A DNA stretch of 63,721 nt, filler included, from Reticulomyxa filosa (GCA_000512085.1; 26 parts of 26 records of this genome joined end to end with filler, not necessarily neighbours in it), one strand, 5' to 3'; shown: positions 49,684 through 61,208, counted from the whole stretch's first letter. Translations and numbers: made by a program. Notes: a model not told the origin generated them from the letters alone.

Positions 49684-51110
49684 TGTTTTGATATTTATCC
49701 NNNNNNNNNNNNNNNNNNNNNNNNNNNNNNNNNNNNNNNNNNNNTTAATTAATTAANNNNNNNNNNNNNNNNNNNNNNNNNNNNNNNNNNNNNNNNNNNN
49801 TAGGTTCACATTGCTTTAATTGAAACATATTACAACCACTGAACATATGACACAAAGAATAAATATACAAACCAAACTTCAAATATAGCTTGTTTCCTTC
49901 GCACCTGATCGACGTTTGCCATTTTGTTGTTTTGCTGTTCTTGCCTTTTTTTTTCCACAGCTCCTGATAAAGATATCTTTTCTCTTCTTGTACTGTGTGG
50001 ACTTATCACGAAGCAATCCACTTTTGAGCAATCATTGCGATAAATATGATTGATATGAATTCACATCGCCTCCTTCATCCTCGATGGTGATTCGTGATAC
50101 TGCACATTTATGATCGTTGATATACTTGTGAACTGTTTTCCTCCAATGCCAGTTAATCAGCCTGCTTGCTGGACGTTTTTTCACAATGCAATTATATCCA
50201 ACCTGTTTTCAAGTGATCCATTTATTGCACAACACATTTATCCGATAATAATATCAACGCGCTGATAACCACATTAATAATTTGTTTGGTCACGTTCAAT
50301 GTTTGGATAACTCGTGGCAACACAACTTGCTGACAATACAATTCGAGCAGCTCTATTGTTGGAGGAGCTCAAGTGTCCATCAATAGTACAAATAGATTCT
50401 GTTGACAATGGTAAAAGGCATTCAATGCTTCGATAACACACAGCTTGGAGATTATGGTGATGGGTGGGATGGTGGTGAAATCGAAGAAAGAGTAAAGACG
50501 ATCACTCCAACGAATGCTTGTATCGAATTCACTTGAACTGGTTCTATGTACGTACACACATACTTGATTTTTCTGTACATATCAACGGCAGCCACGGCAA
50601 TACCAATTCTATCTCCTTTTTGATAGCGACATTTTGAGTTTGCAACACTGACCTTGTTTTAATGCATGAGAATGTCCGCTTCAACACATTTACAAATTTG
50701 AACATTGCCACCAAGACGCCAATATGAAAAATACGATTAAACAATCCTTGACATTAGCTTGATCGGCCTGAAGATGATTCCCAAAAGTACAGTCGACTAA
50801 TACCATGACGAAATTGGGCTTGGTGCCGACGATGATATTGATATCCATCCAATGCAAGCTTGTTCGGTTCNNNNNNNNNNNNNNNNNNNNNNNNNNNNNN
50901 NNNNNNNNNNNNNNTTAATTAATTAANNNNNNNNNNNNNNNNNNNNNNNNNNNNNNNNNNNNNNNNNNNNTAAAAAGTTAAACAAGGATTTTATGTATAA
51001 ATCCAAATTGATCAATCATTTTTGTTTATTTTGAGATTGCCAATGCTGAAAAATAATCACGGAAGTTTTATTTAGCGGCTGGGTAAAATAGAAGTTTCAT
51101 TCAAAGAAGC

Positions 51111-52000
51111 CTATGCGATGTCTGACGACAGCAGAGTCTTGTTAATACCATATGTAATGATAATTTCGTTGATTTCATTTACCCATGTAAATCTTATTTG
51201 CAGAGTTCGAATCCAATATTTCAAAATATACTTTATTTCATTTTTTAACTATAATCACAATACAATGTATTTTTGTTTTATTAAAATATATAATAAACAA
51301 ATAATTACCAATTGTGAGGTATCCCATAAACGTAATTTCGTTTTTATATGAATCACAAGTTCATTATGTTCTTGATCCATTCCTCCAATTATATGTATAT
51401 CATTGTCTTCACTTAATACTGCAACGCCGTCAGATAATGCAATCGGTAAAGTCTCTTCAAATATACTCCATATATTTTCTTGAATCGAATACTTATGCAA
51501 TAATCTTAAATTATTTCGGTTATAGCCTCCAAAAAATAATATATGCTCATTTAAATGAATATATGCATGCCCATGAAATTCGACCATACTTTGACGAACA
51601 GGTACGTAATTACATATTATAGTGTTATACTTTTCATTATACTTAATAAAAATCATTTTATCAAATGAAAGTATAATCATTTGATGAATTTGCTCATTTT
51701 TGAGCCCATTCACAATTGCAAAACATAAACTATAAATAAAATACATTTCATCTCGAAATGTTTTATTTAAAACAAAATTAAATTTATTTAAATCAAATAT
51801 GCTAAATTGATTTACATAATTGATAAATAACAAATGATTTTTGCTTCCACCAATAGATGCACGCACTCCATAATAAGATTTATGTTCTCCAATTACAATT
51901 TGATTATTATCATTGTCTGTGAAAGGAACCCAACGATTGTAATGATTTACTTTTATTCCTTTTTTTGATAGATCACTCCAAACATTTACATATTTCATTA
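51111..52000 (-). CDS. Kelch-like propeller protein 3' part (5' end missing or decayed), ending in the helical module exon 51248..51111
   Basis: GVRASIGGSKNHLLFI, ILFFGG, IHIIGG. A 60-nt phase-0 intron 51308..51249 is followed by LKNEIKYILKYWIRTLQIRFTWVNEINEIIITYGINKTLLSSDIA*. Confidence 0.75.
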
Positions 52001-52968
52001 CTAATGTGATTTTTTTTTTGAACAACACGTTAAGTAAAAAAATATAAATCATATTTTTAATATTATTAAAAGTTATTATAATTATATTTATACAAAAAAA
52101 TAATTTATTTTAATTTTGAATTTAATAAAAAATGTAGTTCTAGTGCAAAATATTTATAGATTTATCAATTTATAATATCATTGATATATCCATCAATTTT
52201 ATTCTAAATAATCATTTATCATTACATATCACAACTAATGTAAAGATGTTTCAACTATATTGTGTAAAATATACTTTCATTATTTTGACCTTTTTTTAGA
52301 ACATAAAGGAGACTAGAAGTATTAGAATGTGAGTTTAAGTTCTGTAATTAGACAGAAACGCTACAGTAAAACTAATTATATTTGCACTAATTGTGTTACC
52401 CAAGTTGAATCATTTCAATATAGTACAACACATTATATAAAAAATATTGATACACTGAGACTTCAAGATTCAATGATATTATGATGTGACTACTCTATAA
52501 TTGATTAATCTTTATGTGATATTGAACAAGGAAAAAAATGAAAAGGCAAATACGTCCAAAGATATTCAATATAACTTTGTAATGTAAACATCATCTGTAC
52601 AATTTTATAAATGTCATTGATTTTCCAACAAAGTAAGCTGTCTTTTTTCACAAAGACCTAGATTTTAAAAAGATTTATTAAGTAACGTACTTGTCTGCTT
52701 AAAATATCTGCTTAAAAAAATACTACCAACTGTTCGGAAAATTATGACTAGGTTTTCCTCAAGCGATCAAAAATAAATCCAATATTTGTCTTTTTGTTTG
52801 ATTCTTTAATCAGAAGTACGCTACTGACATCAAACATTGTTATCAGCAATATTTATTGTCACAAAAAATAGTTTTGCTGAAGTAAAAGTTGACAGATAAT
52901 ATTGACAAATTTCAGTCCATAAACAAAGGCAATACACACAATCTACACCAATATAGAATCAGAAAAAA

Positions 52969-55900
52969 TTAAAATTTTCCTCCACGTTGTTCCACAAGCA
53001 ATTTTTGTTGAGGTGTCAAGCCCAATGTATTCTCCCAAATACTGTCTTTCATTGACAAGCCATAACTTTGAACACCCACTTGCCAAATACACTTCACTAA
53101 ACCAGTCTTAGAAACACTAGAAATTTCATTCTCTGTACTCCATAATCGAATTGTTCTATCATCTGAACATGAAACTATTTTTGAACCGTCTCGTGATAAG
53201 CTAACTCCACAAATAGCTCCAGTATGTCCTTCTAGTAATAGGATTTGCTGTCCTGAAGACGAATCCCATATTCGGATGGTTTTGTCTCCTAAATGTGAGA
53301 TAATCTTAGAACCATCTGGTGAAAATTGTGCTTTCACTATATCATCAAATATCACTTTTACCATATGAAGTTGATTTCCAGAAAGTAGATCCCATATTCG
53401 GATCGTGTTATCCCACGAACATGTTATAATTTTGGAATTATCTGGTACAAACTGTACTGAAATTAGTCGCCCTTCGTGTCCCTTTAATAATTGAAGTTGC
53501 TTTCCAGTTGATGTATCACAAATTATAACTATTTTATCATCTGAGCATATCGCAATTCTAGATCCATCATATGAAAATGGCATTTTGTTAGCTATGTATA
53601 TCCATCCTTCAACTGATTGTAGTTGCTTTCCAGACTCTATGTCCCACAATCGAACTGTTTTATCCACAGAACGAGACACGATCTTGGAACTATCTGGTGA
53701 AAATTGTACGCCCGTTATATCGTTTGAATGCCCTTTCAGTGTCTGAATACGCCTTCCTGATGGTATATCCCATAATTGAATGGTTTTGTCATATGAATAC
53801 GACACAACTTTGGACCCATCGGCTGAAAACTGAATTCCATTTATAACCTGTGAATGCCCTTCTAATACTTGTAGCTGTTTTCCTGATAATGTATCCCATA
53901 TTCGAATAGTTTTATCCCATGAACAAGAAACAATTTTGGAATCATCTGGTGCAAATTGTACTCCTATCACAGAGTTTGTATGCCCTTCCAATATTTGAAT
54001 TTGCCTTCCTGATAATACATCCCACAATCGAATCGTTTTATCGTCTGAACATGATACTATTTTTAAACCATCGGACGAGAATTGCACTTTATTTACACAA
54101 TCCAAATGCCCTTCTGATAATTGGATTTTCCGCCCCACCGACATATCCCATATTCTGATGGTTCCGTCATTTGAACATGACAAAATTTTAGATTCCTTTG
54201 GAAAAAATTGTACTCCGGTTACATCACCTGTATGTCCTTCTAATACTTGTAACTGTTTTCCAGATGACACATCCCATATTCGAATTGTTCTATCATCAGA
54301 ACAAGATACAATTTTGGAACAATCTGATGAAAATCGAGCCGCATTTATGTCAGCCGAATGTCCTTCCAGTGATTGAATTTGCTTTCCAGTTTCCAAATCC
54401 CATATTCGAATTGTTCTATCACGTGAACAAGACAGAATTTTGGAGCCATCTGGGGAAAATTGCACTACAGTTACGCGGGCTGAGTGACCTTCTATTATTT
54501 GAATCTTTCGACCTGATGGAAAGTCCCAGATTCTAACGGTTTTATCAGCTGAACATGACACAATTTTAGATCCATCCGGTGAGAATCGAGCTCCAAATAC
54601 AAAATCTGAATGTCCTTCCAATATTTGAACTGAATGTTTCGACGATAAATCCCATACTCGGATTGTCTTATCACGTGAACAAGACAAAATTTTAGAACCA
54701 TCTGGGGAAAATTGCACTGCAGTTATATCACCCGAATGTCCTTCCAATGTTTGACTCTGTTTTCCAGTGGCTACATCCCATATTCGAGCGATAGTATCCC
54801 ATGAGCAAGACACAATTTTGGAACCATCTGGTGAAAACTGTACTTCAGTAACTGGATCGGAATTTCCTTCGATTACTTGAATTTGCTTTCCTGAAGATAA
54901 ATCCCACAGTCGAATTGTCTTATCGTCTGAACATGAAGCAACAAATTTGCCATCTGGTGATATTTGAATTCCATTTACACCACGTAAATGTCCTTCCAAA
55001 TAGGCATACTCTCCAAAATAAACGCCGTTCATTGATGCATTTGTAAAATCAGCTTTATTCAAAAAAGCTTGGCTAAAACTGACATAATTTAAGTTTGCAT
55101 TTTTGAGATCAGTCCCTTCGAGGAATGCATTGTCTAGTACTGCATGCGGAATTTTAATATTATTCCAATCTCTGTAATGCATGTTAATATTGACCACATT
55201 GAGTATAGTAATCGCATTTGCTGCTGCAACGCTGACATTTTCATTGGTCTTTGACGCCTCAAGGATTCGGAATAGTCTTGATTTAAAATTTGCATATATT
55301 GGATTTGTATCGTGGATTCTCTCACCAATAAACTTAATAATTCCCGATTCTCCGTTCAACAGCTTGTAATTAACAAGGAACTTCTGGACATGCGTTTCAA
55401 ATTGCTTTTGAAATTGTTCATTGCTTAGATTAAAGTTACTTGGCTTCCATGAAATGATATCAAGGACAATTTTTTGTGCGGCATAATATTCTTGGCATGA
55501 TTTATGCAAAAATTGGTACTTGTTATCTCCACTCCTTCTTAGGACGTATTTAGAAATACTATCACCATCGAAATATTTTTCCCAAACATCTGGTGGTTTT
55601 GCAGATGAACTGTTATCTTCTGTTTTTATCTCCGTGCTTTCAATTATAAATTGGTGTTGGTTGTCTTCTTCTTTTTTCGGTTCGTCTTTGTCTACACTTC
55701 CGCTATTAAAGTATTTTTTCCAAATACTTCGTTTCGCACCTCTTTTTTTACTTGTTTGTATTCTTTCTTCAATTTTTTTTTCGGTTTGTATTTTTGGATC
55801 TAATTGGCTCCATATTTCGTTTTGGGGCTGTAATTCTGGCTCAATTGCAATTTGACCTCCTTGAATGAACATATCAAATGCCAAATCATGACAATATTGT

Positions 55901-58770
55901 TTTAGTGCTGACTTAATTTTTGTAAAGTTTGTTTGTATTCGCAATTCGGCTAATTTGGACGTTATGTTTTGCGTATGAATATCAACCCATTGATCGTTGA
56001 ATACTTCATACACTTGTGCTCGAGAAATTCTGCTTCCGACACCGTATTGTTTTACCAATGATGGCAATACAGTTAGAATAAGTTGGAGAAGAACTGGTTC
56101 TTCCACCATTTTCTGCAGATTCGGATAATTATTTAATGTTTCTTCGTATTGTTTTGGTGTCCAATCACTATTCTTTTCATCATAATTTTTAGAATGCATT
56201 TTCGCAAATTTTTCAATGTAACTGTGCATTTGTTGTTTTGTAAATGGCCACAAATACATCATTGAGGTATAATTTTGGTTTGCACCAAATAGAGTAATCT
56301 TGATATCTTCTTCACTCAGTACGTTGCTTCTACAAGTAACAACAATTTTTGCGTTCCATTGATTCAAATTGAAACGATCATAGAAATATGGCACATCTTC
56401 ATTTTGACGATAAAAATCAAATATTTCATCAAATCCATCCATAATGAATACAAAAGATGCTTGCTCACAAATGGCGTCCATAATTTCCTTGCTGATATTT
56501 TTACCTTGCAATGCTTGCAAAACGATATCCCTTTCATTTTGCTTGTTGTAAATTTTTGCAAATGAAATGTAAACAGGAATTGGCTTTTTGGAGTCAGTTA
56601 TATAATTGTTCCACAATGTTTGTTCCAAATAACGGCAAAATATGCTTTTTCCTGATCCTGATTTACCTTGAATTATCATTACTTTTTTTTGATCATTTTT
56701 TTTTTCTTCTTCCAAAAATTCAAGCACGCGTTGATGGCAGTCATAGGTATCATGTTTTTGTTTATTGTCTCCGTGGGGATAGTTATTTGCCTGCAATGGG
56801 ATATATGTTTCAAGATTCTGTAATACAGCGATATCTTCTTGTATTTCCTGGTTTCTTGATTCTTGCAACAATAATGCAAAATCGGCACAGCTGGCTGGAT
56901 TCTTGTTTCCAATGATGTATTTTTTGTAATATTCATACAAAATTACATAAATCGCTTTGCCTTTCACAGTGGCTGGGATGAATGTACTAAGTTGATCATA
57001 TACAAATTGTGCCATTTTCAAAGACACTTTATTATCGATTTCTGTTTTTGTTTTTTTAGACAGTTGTGGTGGTTTCAATATTCCAATGTCCGAATGCAAC
57101 TTGCAACGATCAGCTATTTTCTGTAATCCCTTTTCGTCAATCCACTCACAAATGACATCATTGATTTTTGTTAGTGTCTCATCACTTACTTGTCTCAGTT
57201 CTTCCTCTTCGGGGTCACTTGGTCTCCATGCTCTGATGAGCTCATAGTACAAATGACTCAGCTTTGGATTCTCAATTACAGTGTAACCCTCAAAGGTTGT
57301 GAAGCTCTTCAAAGTCGCCTGCATTTCCACGTAAACATCGTGTTTTGGAACATATAATTTGATGTTGTGGAAGCGATGATGTGTTTTGGATTGTCTTTCA
57401 AAGAAATCTTTATCTTCGGACACAATCAAATTAAATTTTTCAGCTTTCTTCAACAGCGCAACTGCAGTTTGCAATTTGGTTGGATTATCACATAAAATAG
57501 TAAATCTCCCAATATCGAATACTTGATTGTAATCGCCTTTATAATCGTATTGAATCTTTTCCAACAATCTTGTCTTATCTTTTACTTGTCCGGGCTTCAC
57601 CACAGTAATTAAGTATTTCTGCAACTCTGCTATCAAATTTAACAGCTCACTGCTTTGCATTGCAGCCTCACTTCGGATAATTAAATCCTCCAAACTCGTT
57701 GAATGCTGTCGAATTTTGTTGGCCTTTAATTCATATGATAACCCTGGTTTAATTGTATAGAAACATTGGTAATTATTTTCTTTCACCGGCACTGAACCAT
57801 CATTCGCAGAAATGAGATGTTCTGAATTGGAAACCAGTGCTTTTACAACTGATGCAATAGCGAATTGTCCACAATCCGGACAGCAGTAAGACGTTTTGTC
57901 TGATACAAATGAAATGTCTCCAAATCCGATATTCACCCACACCGGGATCTTTGCTTTTGCTGCCAAACAATCCGTATTTTTGCAATACCCTTGCAAATTT
58001 ATTCCCGGTTTAGTTTCACCAATTTCCACTTTTTCCTCTTCTTTTTTCAATTTGTCAGATTTTTGTTCCATTTCCTCATGCATTTTTAGTTCCTATTTTA
58101 AAAAATTAAATAAACAAGTATAAAAAAAAATAGTCGAGAAAGAAAGGCATTGCATCATTCAGTGTGACCTGATCGATTTTACTTTCGGAGGGTTGTGTTC
58201 CGTGCTCTGAAACATGATTTTGATTTTCAATCTTTTATTTATTTATTTATTTAGTTTATGTATTTATTATTTTTTTTATTTATTTTGTTAATTTGCAAAA
58301 CAAGATTGATTTTTTTTTTTTTTGCATTGAAAATATAGAATATACATTTGAATCCATGAATTTAGAGATGATCTTCTCGACCACCACACCGACATTTCCA
58401 TTATTTTCCTCGAGATGTTTCTTCAACTCGTCCTTGTCAAGCGTCTCACTGCACAGTCTTGCCAATGCTTTCATTTGCGTTTCGTATCTTCCTTCGGAAC
58501 TGTTTTGCATTCCCCCTAATAGTTTCATACCTTTACGATAAGCAGAACTCCATTCATTTCCATCGTTTTGTGCAAATGCATACATAGCGTTTTTGGCCTG
58601 ATCGAGCAGGGCATATACAAAAAACACGCACAATTGTAAAAAAAAAAAAAGTAGTGATTTGTGCCTTCATTCGACATGTAAGAAATACTCTCATTTTTAC
58701 CTCTATTGCAAAAACGCAATCGCTGATGTCAATATCAGTGTTATATTGTTTCGACATAATTGTTTCCTCA
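52969..58770 (-). CDS. NLR-like STAND protein: UBA/CUE-like + Zn-ribbon + RelA/SpoT-like nucleotidyltransferase + NACHT + pentapeptide + 15x WD40
   Basis: Terminal exon 58092..52969. Upstream phase-0 exons 58231..58169, 58597..58346 and one ending at 58701 (start unresolved). Walker A GKSGSGKS (about 56644-56667), Walker B FVFIMDGFDE, VTCR sensor, FLHKS.QEY winged-helix motif, pentapeptide tract, 15 WD40 repeats. Confidence 0.92.
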
Positions 58771-59784
58771 ACACCTTTTTTTTTTCCAATCCGTTTCATC
58801 CCCATATTTTTTTAAACAAGAAAAATGATAACGCATTAGTACAGATATCCTTTTTGTACAGATTAGTTTTTTTTATTACCTCCTTGGACTTTTGAAATTA
58901 ATTTTAATGCTTTTTTTGACGTTTCCCTGATCGAGTTTAGTTGTATGTCGAGGGTTGCGGTCACTGTTTTTTTTTGTTGACACGAAAAAAAGATACGATA
59001 TTACAACAGTTGGACCTGGTTGTATCCCGAATAGCAACGAATGCTACAAGAACGATTAGCTTTTTATAGTTTTCTGAAAAAATGATTATCGAAAAAACGC
59101 ACAGCCCAGTTTCAAAACGTTTGCAAGCCGGGTCGGTCCCCGGTCGTGACCTACACAACTTTTGAAAATGCATTTTTTTTCTTGTTTCTGCGTACGTGAG
59201 ATGTATCACAATTATTTTTTGTTCTCGGGCAAAAATTTTCTGTTAAGTTTCAACAAGCTATTATTAAAGTTGGGGCAAGTGATAGGCACACTAAGCATGC
59301 AAACAAACTAATGCAAACTAAACGGGCTAGCAATGGGCACAGCCTTCATTTCTTCAAATACACTATAGCGTGTGGACAATAAAAAAATATATTTCGTTGT
59401 TAAGAAAAGAGGGGATACTTTCGCAAAAAAAAAAAAAAGCTTTGTTTAGCAAAAAGGGGTCTATTATGGGAGCTACATATAGCAAATTAAACAGCAAGCA
59501 TTTTTTTTTCTCGCTGTTGTGACCTTCATCTCTACTATGGAGAAACGCCAAAAAAAGAAAAAAAATTGTTTTTCAACAATAGTATGTTGTTATTGTTTAT
59601 CAAATGAGACAAAACAAAACAGAAAAAAAAAGCACATCCAAAGTCAACAAAAAAAAAAAAAGGAATTAAGGGCACAAGAAAGAAAAAGACTGGATAGTGC
59701 CAAATCCAAATTAAAGTGAGGGAGATGGAGAAAGGGGAGAAGAGTACACAAGGGGAGACATGTGTATCTGTGTTAAAGATGGAG

Positions 59785-61172
59785 TTAGGAAAGTTTAGCT
59801 TGACATTGATAGAAATCCCAAAATTGAGTCAAAGGATGGGTTTTGTTTTCAATGTTTTGAATGAATTGACACAAGGCTTTGTCTCGAACGTGCTGTCTGT
59901 ATTCCGTTTCTTGCGACAGCAGCAGATTGGCTTTGTGCAGAGCACCAGCGGCGGCGAAACAGGACATAGAGGAAGACAAGCACGATCACGAGAAGAACGA
60001 GGACATAGATCCAACTGGTGTGTTTATCCAACGAAAACAAAAATCGACATTTGCATTTGGAGTCCCTTTTCCCCCATTTCAACACGACGTCATACTCGTG
60101 TTCGGATATCAATCCGCGTTCGTCACCTACCTTGAAAAGGTCGTCTTTGGTTGCCACTATTCCACTTGCACTCATCATTGTATTTGCACCGGTGACAATA
60201 GGAATAGTGCTTGGTTCCATATCTTTGTTAGCTCGTTTTTCTTTGCAGGATTTCTTACTTTTCTTCTTTTTGACTTTTGCTTTTTTGTCTTTGTCTTTTT
60301 TTTTAGTTTTCCCGGAAATATGCACTTGAGCTTTTTTTTTATCCTTATCTTTATCTTTATCTTTGTCCTTCTTTGGACTGACTTTGGCCTCGGCGGCACA
60401 ACGCTTTGCCTCTTTGACAAAGTCTTGTATTTTGGTATCAATAACGACGACATACTTTTCAATATCATCTTTGCAGCCCTTCAATGACCGCGTTTTGATC
60501 TGACCTTTGAAAAACGAGCTCTTATGCCACTCGCATGCAAACAGCACCTTACAAATGGTAGTGAGTTTCAACGGCTGATTGGCCGCCACGAACACACACT
60601 TTTGTCGCCATTCCCATTTTTCGTGCATAGTATACGTATCGCCAAAGGGTACGTCCTTTGCTTGTGTCATGCGATGCCACACGAATGCGTTGTCCGACGC
60701 TTGACAAGCACGCTCGCTTCGCTCGACTCGACTCTCCGTCGCCACCGTCCCCGACAACGCCACAAACGCCGGCAAATCGTCCAGCTTCGTAATCAGCTGC
60801 ACGTCCCGCTTTTGCCAGCTGCGTCCGTTGTGCGTGTACCAGTTCTCCCATTTGCTGCTCACTACGTCGCGGTTCTTCGGATTCTCAGTCAAGTACTCCT
60901 TTATCGGGTACTTGGCGTCCTCGCTGAAGAACCACTTCCACATGTCTTTGATCGCACAGTCAAATTCGTGCGACACTATCGGCTCGAACTCCAATTTCAA
61001 AGGCATCCCCACCTTCCCGACTTTGTAATCGGGCAAATAATTTAGGTCTTCGTTTAGTCCCGATAACTTTTCCGCCAAACTGGGCGACGCGACCATTTCG
61101 TCGTTTTTATTGTTTTCATCCTTGTCATTGCTGTTGTTGTTGTTTGTACTGTCATCGTTTGCTGCTTCATTG

Positions 61173-61208
<36 letters not shown>
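59785..61208 (-). CDS. VASt (StART-like, LAM/GRAMD1-type) lipid-transfer protein with C-terminal TM, 3' part
   Basis: S.W......R, T...DVPFGDTY....W and W.KSSFFKGQI VASt motifs; Lys-rich linker; TM WIYVLVLLVIVLVFLYVLF. Stop at 59849, or at 59785 if frameshifted. Confidence 0.8.

Follow-up and report, generated by a model that had tools for sequence, protein, structure and literature searches.

Proteins in which a RelA_SpoT domain is the N-terminal effector of a nucleotide-binding oligomerization domain-like receptor (NLR), including the order RelA_SpoT-NACHT-WD40, were recorded in fungal genomes by Dyrka et al. in 2014 (PMC4986451), and they still form a rare and uncharacterised class (PMC12258605, a survey of Sordariales; PMC10197012). 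Among the RelA/SpoT homologue (RSH) enzymes, Tas1/Apk1 is a secreted type VI toxin of Pseudomonas aeruginosa (PDB 6OX6) with a separate immunity protein; it makes (p)ppApp and depletes ATP (PMC11782079). The toxic small alarmone synthetases (toxSAS) CapRel and FaRel2 are single-chain bacterial proteins that have no NTPase, carry a C-terminal pseudo-zinc-finger domain (pZFD) and act on tRNA. The bNACHT and Avs-type antiphage proteins are prokaryotic signal transduction ATPases with numerous domains (STAND), in which a C-terminal sensor is coupled to an N-terminal toxic effector. Here we analyse a gene on the minus strand of a 63,721-nucleotide stretch of DNA (the window) from the naked freshwater foraminiferan Reticulomyxa filosa (GCA_000512085.1). 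The piece looked at is 50971-61208, and coordinates are those of the whole window. A preliminary description of the stretch had proposed an NLR-like receptor with a RelA/SpoT-type effector.

The gene encodes, in this order, a CUE-like exon, a four-cysteine β domain, an RSH pyrophosphokinase domain, a NACHT NTPase, pentapeptide repeats and a WD40 double propeller. The tripartite layout of an NLR, in which a central NTPase stands between an N-terminal effector and C-terminal superstructure-forming repeats, is thus present, with the RSH domain at aa 120-335, NACHT at aa 468-626 and WD40 at aa 1028-1649. The reading that we favour, with modest confidence and largely by analogy, is that of a STAND/NLR protein whose effector is a trigger-gated, Tas1/Apk1-like pyrophosphokinase making (p)ppApp.

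The fungal precedent, to which the preliminary description had also pointed, is well documented (PMC4986451). Set against the architectures in that survey, the R. filosa protein is like the fungal RelA_SpoT-NACHT-WD40 proteins in placing the enzyme domain before NACHT and NACHT before WD40. In both groups the enzyme is the predicted direct effector of a multi-copy, lineage-specific and biochemically uncharacterised set of proteins. The R. filosa proteins differ from the fungal NLRs in belonging to another supergroup (Rhizaria, Foraminifera) and in having the extra CUE-like exon, the four-cysteine β domain and the pentapeptides. They also differ in number, with at least 57 copies in R. filosa, whereas RelA_SpoT effectors are a rare class in fungi. 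The literature searched for Reticulomyxa or protists held no description of a RelA_SpoT-type NLR family. The design is therefore known from fungi; its presence in a distant supergroup, its large expansion, the added N-terminal modules, the Tas1-like branch of the enzyme and the changed acceptor residue are new.

Fold and relatives of the RSH domain

The RSH synthetase-type domain (toxSYNTH, Tas1/Apk1-like) is encoded at 57079-57726. An AlphaFold2 model of aa 120-335, built from a 40-sequence alignment, had a predicted local distance difference test score (pLDDT) of 81.7 and a predicted template modelling score (pTM) of 0.71, and a second model spanning aa 22-340 reached a pLDDT of 87.2 and a pTM of 0.77. 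A Foldseek search of the PDB with the aa 120-335 model returned RSH synthetases at all of the top 50 positions. Tas1 was first (E 8.4e-7), and the other matches included an exported Streptomyces small alarmone synthetase (SAS), RelP, RelQ, Rel, SpoT and CapRel. With VIA-align the first model matched Tas1 at Z 11.7 (168 residues, root mean square deviation 3.6 Å) and SAS enzymes at Z 10-11. The second model was compared with 48,161 chains independently of Foldseek; Tas1 again matched best, at Z 13.6, and the ten chains with Z of 8 or more were all RSH enzymes.

In the VIA-align comparisons the other RSH synthetases (SAS1/SAS2/RelP, Rel, CapRel and RelA) gave Z values of about 9-13, against about 6-7 for CD-NTase, Pol X and TUTase folds; in the search independent of Foldseek, CD-NTases, Pol X, TUTases, RsfS and MenT came after the RSH enzymes at 5-7.7. 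An identity as a generic Pol-β-type nucleotidyltransferase, as a CD-NTase/cGAS-like enzyme or as a MenT-like enzyme was rejected, as these score below the RSH enzymes and the motif set is RSH-specific. The preliminary description had named the RelA/SpoT (Pol-β-like) fold beforehand as a point on which it could fail; the fold, an α/β nucleotidyltransferase-like core in which helices flank a mixed sheet, stands, and the assignment of aa 120-335 to it is nearly certain.

The sequence leads to the same superfamily. The RelA/SpoT-like motif strings picked out in the preliminary description are present at residues 167-176, 189-196, 235-243, 251-255 and 276-284 (57229-57606), and their agreement with the RSH motifs, judged by sequence, is far beyond chance. 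The isolated N-terminal part of the protein has RelA_SpoT (PF04607) as its sole Pfam match (E 8.9e-5, 23.2 bits). Of 40 paralogous domains scanned singly, 38 also match RelA_SpoT (E < 0.01; best 3.9e-7), and one paralog, P0001, has a precomputed PF04607 assignment. Among PDB sequences the only match at E ≤ 0.01 is Tas1 (6OX6), both with the single sequence (E 0.0054) and with the 40-sequence profile (E 0.0026).

When the 40-sequence profile was run with HMMER over 1.84 billion representatives, 116 proteins were found at E ≤ 1e-3. About 45 of these, close relatives or fragments of them, come from R. filosa or from metagenomes of soil or water, and the remainder form a distant tail. The aligned distant relatives have the invariant K, K, D, R, E-x-Q and H-x2-Y-x3-R positions in common with the R. 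filosa family, and 17 of 58 reach Pfam RelA_SpoT on their own at E ≤ 1e-3 (best 3.6e-10). HHalign joins the R. filosa family to this wider family with a probability of 99.7 % (E 5e-27, 182 columns). The wider-family profile in turn matches Tas1 (E 6.6e-20), the YwaC/RelP-type SAS (1.3e-11), YjbM/RelQ (1e-7) and RelSeq (1.8e-5). These matches close a homology chain from the foraminiferan domain through the wider family to bona fide RSH synthetases. The nearest outgroup, P0100 from a metagenome contig, scores 40.6 bits against Pfam RelA_SpoT, above the threshold of the family. Searches of the ESM Atlas by features and by shape returned only clusters that are unnamed or that bear RelA_SpoT.

Tas1 is the nearest characterised relative, ranked first in every sequence and structure search that was run, and by profile and model the R. 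filosa domain falls within the Tas1/Apk1-like branch of the RSH superfamily. The two have the pattern K-x3-R-x2-EK...DY-x-GD...D-x2-R, the E-x-Q motif and the GH-x-YYE-x2-R segment in common, at an identity of about 16-21 % over the structurally aligned part. They differ in setting: Tas1 is secreted, whereas the R. filosa domain is fused within a eukaryotic STAND protein. The bNACHT and Avs proteins, which resemble the R. filosa protein in being STAND NTPases with a sensor behind a toxic effector, carry other effector domains.

The settings in which the relatives occur bear on what the enzyme might do. Bacterial members of the wider family are found in toxin contexts, both in eCIS_core/DUF4157 giants (for example a Polyangia protein) and at C-terminal positions in large proteins. 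In one JGI metagenome protein of 2115 aa, P0119, the Tas1-like domain lies at 813-993; its source name is that of an SPP1 gp7-family phage head morphogenesis protein, and it may be a phage-delivered enzyme. An alternative to a lethal enzyme is one whose product, whether (p)ppGpp or a pyrophosphorylated nucleotide that is related to it or novel, acts as a second messenger and is not lethal; downstream proteins would read it, and the NLR would signal and not kill. The structural closeness of RelP, RelQ and Rel speaks for such a messenger, as does the finding that exported SAS enzymes can make both A- and G-alarmones (PMC12691689), and the histidine that replaces the acceptor tyrosine (see below) could change the choice of acceptor. 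Nevertheless, the nearest characterised relative is a toxin, the bacterial relatives stand in toxin-delivery contexts (eCIS_core, C-terminal toxin positions, the phage head-protein fusion), and the 10-kb piece showed neither a receptor nor a hydrolase partner. We consider a messenger role very improbable.

Fusions to NTPases and repeats also occur outside foraminifera. P0123, from an ENA metagenome contig (L001 2745-6257), is an Ank-RSH-NACHT protein, and of the RSH motifs found outside that group its own (RFT-x-x-C, Y-V-E-M-Q) come closest to those of the R. filosa family. Together with P0100 and P0101 it is closest to the R. filosa domain in motif detail, so that a NACHT fusion and a protein that passes the Pfam threshold are both in the closest set. 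The diatom Proboscia alata (P0162, MMETSP transcriptome) has an NPHP3_N/NACHT-like NTPase at 64-232, an RSH domain at 342-531 and WD40 repeats at 924-1322. This order, NPHP3_N-RSH-WD40, is unlike that of the foraminiferan family. A Triparma protein, P0140, has TPR and C1 domains with its RSH domain, and there are several further RSH-TPR proteins. The sources of 30 relatives were looked up, and not one bore a fungal label.

Catalytic residues and evolution of the paralog family

A search with the first 460 residues found 56 further proteins, 47-77 % identical over that part and all annotated as Reticulomyxa filosa, in keeping with the foraminiferan host suspected in the preliminary description. 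The gene is, on this count, one of at least 57 family members; two of the paralogs were placed in assembly GCA_000512085.1. Within the RSH domain 40 paralogs differ by 17-45 %. Eleven residues, K168, R172, E175, K176, D190, R193, E253, Q255, H277, Y280 and R284, are nevertheless invariant in all of them and align with positions that the wider family also keeps invariant. Five of the eleven (K168, D190, R193, E253 and Q255) had been named beforehand as residues whose variation among paralogs would count against an RSH enzyme, and the Asp and the Glu-x-Gln pair that the preliminary description called intact (D190, E253, Q255) are among them.

The donor-ATP motif Syn1 (K, S/R and K on the basic helix) and the Mg-binding motif Syn2 (D-x2-4-R) are both present, with K168, R172, K176, D190 and R193 matching Tas1 and the wider family. 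By alignment to FaRel2/SAS numbering (PMC11782079), K168, R172 and K176 are predicted to bind the triphosphate of the donor ATP, and D190 would be the Mg-binding catalytic aspartate. Syn4 (E253-x-Q255) and the Syn5 helix (H277, Y280, R284) are likewise present and aligned with Tas1 and the wider family. Like Tas1, the domain is without the first Arg of the classical RxK motif. RelQ/RelP (SAS1/SAS2) and the synthetase domains of Rel, RelA and SpoT have the fold (Z about 7-13) and the Syn1, Syn2, Syn4 and Syn5 logic in common with the R. filosa domain. Their product is (p)ppGpp, which serves the stringent response, and they carry RxK and GYRS, in contrast to the R. filosa family, which lacks that Arg and has His at the Tyr position. 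We consider it fairly likely that the RSH domain of the R. filosa protein is catalytically competent.

Conservation was compared by region as mean identity over 34 full-length paralogs. It is highest in the RSH core (76.5 %), followed by NACHT and the four-cysteine domain (64 % each) and the linker (61 %), and is lowest in the WD40 array (52 %). Nonsynonymous (dN) and synonymous (dS) divergence was calculated by the Nei-Gojobori method (NG86) against the two paralogs for which DNA was available. The RSH domain had the lowest dN of all domains, 0.10, with dS undefined because its synonymous sites are saturated. For NACHT the dN was 0.14-0.15 and dN/dS about 0.14-0.15. The WD40 array had a dN of 0.35-0.36 and a dN/dS of 0.37-0.45, values that are approximate given the ambiguity of repeat register. 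The enzyme domain is thus under strong purifying selection and the WD40 part diverges faster. A lineage-specific expansion with a faster-evolving repeat part is a trait of NLRs, and a conserved enzyme joined to a diverging repeat array is what would be expected of an effector-sensor pair.

The same data bear on the proposal that the RSH-like domain is inert, an oligomerisation or adaptor module, or that the family is a housekeeping one unrelated to non-self recognition. That the canonical acceptor Tyr is replaced, and that this copy falls under the Pfam threshold, would suit an inert domain, and R. filosa has many expanded gene families. However, conservation of the active-site residues is not expected of a mere scaffold. 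Eleven ATP-, Mg- and catalytic-motif residues are invariant across paralogs that differ by 17-45 % in the domain, the RSH dN is the lowest of all domains (with dS saturated), and four paralogs keep Tyr at position 236. An inert or housekeeping protein is accordingly given little probability.

Several paralogs depart from the standard architecture. P0001 (RFI_08856) has, upstream of a complete module (501-716), a second RSH domain of which the C-terminal half and the linker are present (~250-390), and P0058 and P0060 each have two profile-matching stretches; their sequences suggest tandem or fused paralogs, or truncated copies. P0049, annotated as a VCBS repeat protein, is the most divergent R. 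filosa copy. Its four-cysteine and RSH modules lie at the C-terminal end (residues 580-926 of 1017) behind a long Glu/Arg-rich, coiled-coil-like region, and its gene model is without NACHT, which could reflect truncation of the model or a fusion of another kind.

The NLR body and a proposed mechanism

The probable upstream exon encodes a small helical CUE/UBA-like motif that is conserved in most paralogs. Pfam CUE is reached sub-threshold in 4 of 24 members (E 4.6e-4 to 6.7e-4), and there are weak PDB profile matches to the UBA-like regions of USP25 and EF-Ts. It is followed by the N-terminal all-β domain (aa 22-118; 57730-58020), modelled by AlphaFold2 with a pLDDT of about 90-96. C34, C39, C68 and C71 of this domain are invariant or nearly so, and they probably form a zinc site. 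Its structural matches are weak and cupin-like (VIA-align Z ≤ 5.8). No pZFD structure matched in that comparison, so that an identity as a CapRel-type pZFD inhibitor found no structural backing. Pfam gave no match for aa 22-118, nor for the linker between the RSH domain and NACHT (aa 336-467; 56683-57078), which belongs to no known family.

The NACHT-pentapeptide-WD40 module of the preliminary description was recovered in all three of its parts. The NACHT domain (aa 468-626; 56206-56682) matches Pfam with an E of 6e-10 (39.6 bits against a cut-off of 26.7), and both its Walker A motif, GKSGSGKS at aa 473-480 (56644-56667), and its Walker B motif with DGFDE at aa 545-553 (56425-56451) are intact. 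The pentapeptide-repeat segment (aa 971-1025; 55009-55173) is likewise above its cut-off (E 1.2e-7, 31.6 bits against 20.2). The WD40 array (aa 1028-1649; 53137-55002) contains by eye 15 GH...WD units of exactly 42 residues each, of which Pfam scores 14; by sequence, 15 units are enough for two propellers. The units have a mean pairwise identity of 55 %, with variation concentrated at repeat positions 15, 16, 18, 19 and 34, and in the DNA the array appears as a 126-bp repeat in 10.8 copies.

From this architecture a mechanism can be proposed. The WD40 array would keep the protein inactive until a ligand, a non-self or danger signal, binds. NACHT would then exchange nucleotide and oligomerise, as in the established behaviour of STAND/NLR proteins, and the N-terminal enzyme would be released or assembled into its active state. 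In that state it would take pyrophosphate from ATP and attach it to an acceptor at the 3'-OH; given the closeness to Tas1 and the basic, His-rich acceptor loop, this acceptor would most likely be an adenine nucleotide. The build-up of (p)ppApp and the draining of ATP would shut down or kill whatever part of the cell is affected, in the manner of abortive or allorecognition-type responses. The parts of this proposal are not equally firm. We lean slightly towards a role in triggered defence or allorecognition, by analogy with other NLRs. The identification of (p)ppApp as the product is tentative. That an interbacterial-toxin-type pyrophosphokinase was co-opted as the executioner of an expanded foraminiferan NLR family, making (p)ppApp or a novel pyrophosphorylated nucleotide, is a rather unlikely reading when taken as a whole.

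A number of observations weigh against a trigger-gated, Tas1-like enzyme. This copy does not reach the gathering threshold of Pfam RelA_SpoT (23.2 against 27 bits). The acceptor loop, moreover, is altered. The preliminary description had noted His at the Syn3 Tyr position, and profile alignment, with a small correction, assigns that position to His236. The acceptor-stacking Tyr is thus replaced by His in 36 of the 40 paralogs, the other four having Tyr, and the Asp of the wider-family GYRD is Phe238 here, while R237 is conserved. The loop accordingly reads H235-H236-R237-F238, where the wider family has G-Y-R-D, the SAS enzymes G-Y-R-S and Tas1, which retains the acceptor Tyr, G-Y-S-G. In FaRel2 a Tyr-to-Phe change at the acceptor-stacking site impairs catalysis (PMC11782079). 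Given His236, Phe238 and this effect in FaRel2, the acceptor or the activity may differ from those of the known enzymes, and a difference in acceptor specificity in particular is possible from the sequence. The four Tyr paralogs suggest that His and Tyr are interchangeable at position 236 within the family. The WD40 dN/dS of 0.37-0.45 is below 1, and the immune or allorecognition function is itself inferred from architecture, copy number and divergence pattern only.

Regulation raises a further objection. Tas1 is monomeric and constitutively very fast, and needs no activator. As enzymes of this type are extremely fast on their own, the proposed receptor would require inhibition in the resting state. 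Candidates for the inhibitor are the adjacent four-cysteine domain and the NACHT-WD40 body, by analogy with the cis-inhibition of CapRel (PMC11782079). The CapRel and FaRel2 proteins resemble the R. filosa protein in the defence-type switch proposed for it, in which a small neighbour domain holds a toxSYNTH domain inactive in cis until a trigger releases it, and in fold (Z 10), but they gave no sequence-level match.

The same proteins suggest a different chemistry, in which the enzyme of this NLR would, like CapRel, FaRel2 and PhRel, pyrophosphorylate tRNA at the 3' CCA end and block translation, and would not make a free nucleotide. CapRel is among the structural matches (Z 10.0), tRNA-modifying toxSAS serve in phage defence under the control of a small zinc-finger-like domain (PMC11782079) and a four-cysteine domain adjoins the enzyme here, and the altered loop with His236 could suit a non-nucleotide acceptor. 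Even so, Tas1 and the nucleotide-making SAS enzymes outscore CapRel in both sequence and structure, and the four-cysteine domain matches no pZFD structure. In enzymes of the FaRel2 type the positive patch of the acceptor site is reduced, and tRNA is anchored by a basic N terminus (PMC11782079), whereas here Lys, Arg and His abound in the acceptor loop and the helices at the N terminus are without net positive charge (a count by eye, and a weak one). We regard tRNA modification as improbable and retain the (p)ppApp-making enzyme as the favoured reading.

RelA/SpoT-type NLR effectors have appeared in fungal surveys since 2014, and their effect in a eukaryotic cell is now open to test. The design is now seen in a distant supergroup, the Rhizaria, in at least 57 well-conserved copies, with related fusions in a diatom and in environmental eukaryote-like contigs. 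The characterised member of the Tas1/Apk1 branch kills by turning ATP into (p)ppApp, and the tie to this branch makes the isolated 216-residue domain assayable for the draining of ATP or the making of alarmones. The family is a further case of bacterial conflict-system domains reused in eukaryotic proteins that resemble those of innate immunity. Foraminiferal reticulopodial networks fuse and must discriminate self, and the family offers a molecular handle on non-self recognition in these organisms. If the proposal is true, no effector mechanism of immunity or allorecognition in eukaryotes before this one would have been based on alarmones, the diatom and other protist fusions would point to a widespread and overlooked strategy, and (p)ppApp build-up with ATP depletion would be toxic to any cell.

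Gene model and neighbouring genes

The protein is encoded largely by one exon, an open reading frame (ORF) at 52969-58083 whose translation runs for 1704 codons plus stop with no interruption. Coding sequence probably extends a few codons further upstream, to 58092, where an acceptor site precedes it. A probable upstream coding exon lies at 58346-58585, comprising 80 codons from an ATG at 58585 in a frame different from that of the large ORF; the N-terminal extensions of 15 paralog models match ~58304-58627 (tblastn, E down to 2e-21). The upstream and large exons were searched as separate sequences. They would be joined across an intron at 58093-58345, predicted from the sequence and the paralog models. 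This GT...AG segment of 253 nt is AT-rich and has stops in all relevant frames, and the 58346|58092 junction keeps the reading frame and agrees with the protein models of paralogs. A mini-exon at ~58170-58200, within the intron and with a weak likeness to paralog linkers, was rejected, as it has no GT/AG pair in frame with the large exon.

Between NACHT and the pentapeptides lies a post-NACHT region (aa 627-970; 55174-56205) with a Lys/Glu-rich low-complexity insertion. The insertion (55174-55900, minus strand; aa ~730-860), which is also rich in Ser and contains W-x-K-Y-F twice, separates the NACHT-associated region from the pentapeptides. The WD40 array is followed by a C-terminal tail and the stop codon (aa 1650-1704; 52969-53136).

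The 10-kb piece was found to contain no hydrolase-like or immunity-like partner gene and no receptor partner. The flanking ORFs, both on the minus strand, are ordinary eukaryotic genes. Downstream of the NLR gene, a 265-aa ORF at 51255-52052 has weak Kelch matches (Kelch_KLHDC2 E 5.8e-6, sub-threshold) and is probably an exon of a Kelch-repeat gene. Upstream, a 415-aa ORF at 59849-61096 contains a VASt (lipid-transfer) domain (E 1e-12, above threshold). The piece is AT-rich, with a GC content of 20-39 % across most of its length; at 60471-60970 the GC fraction rises to 0.53, well over that of the remainder.

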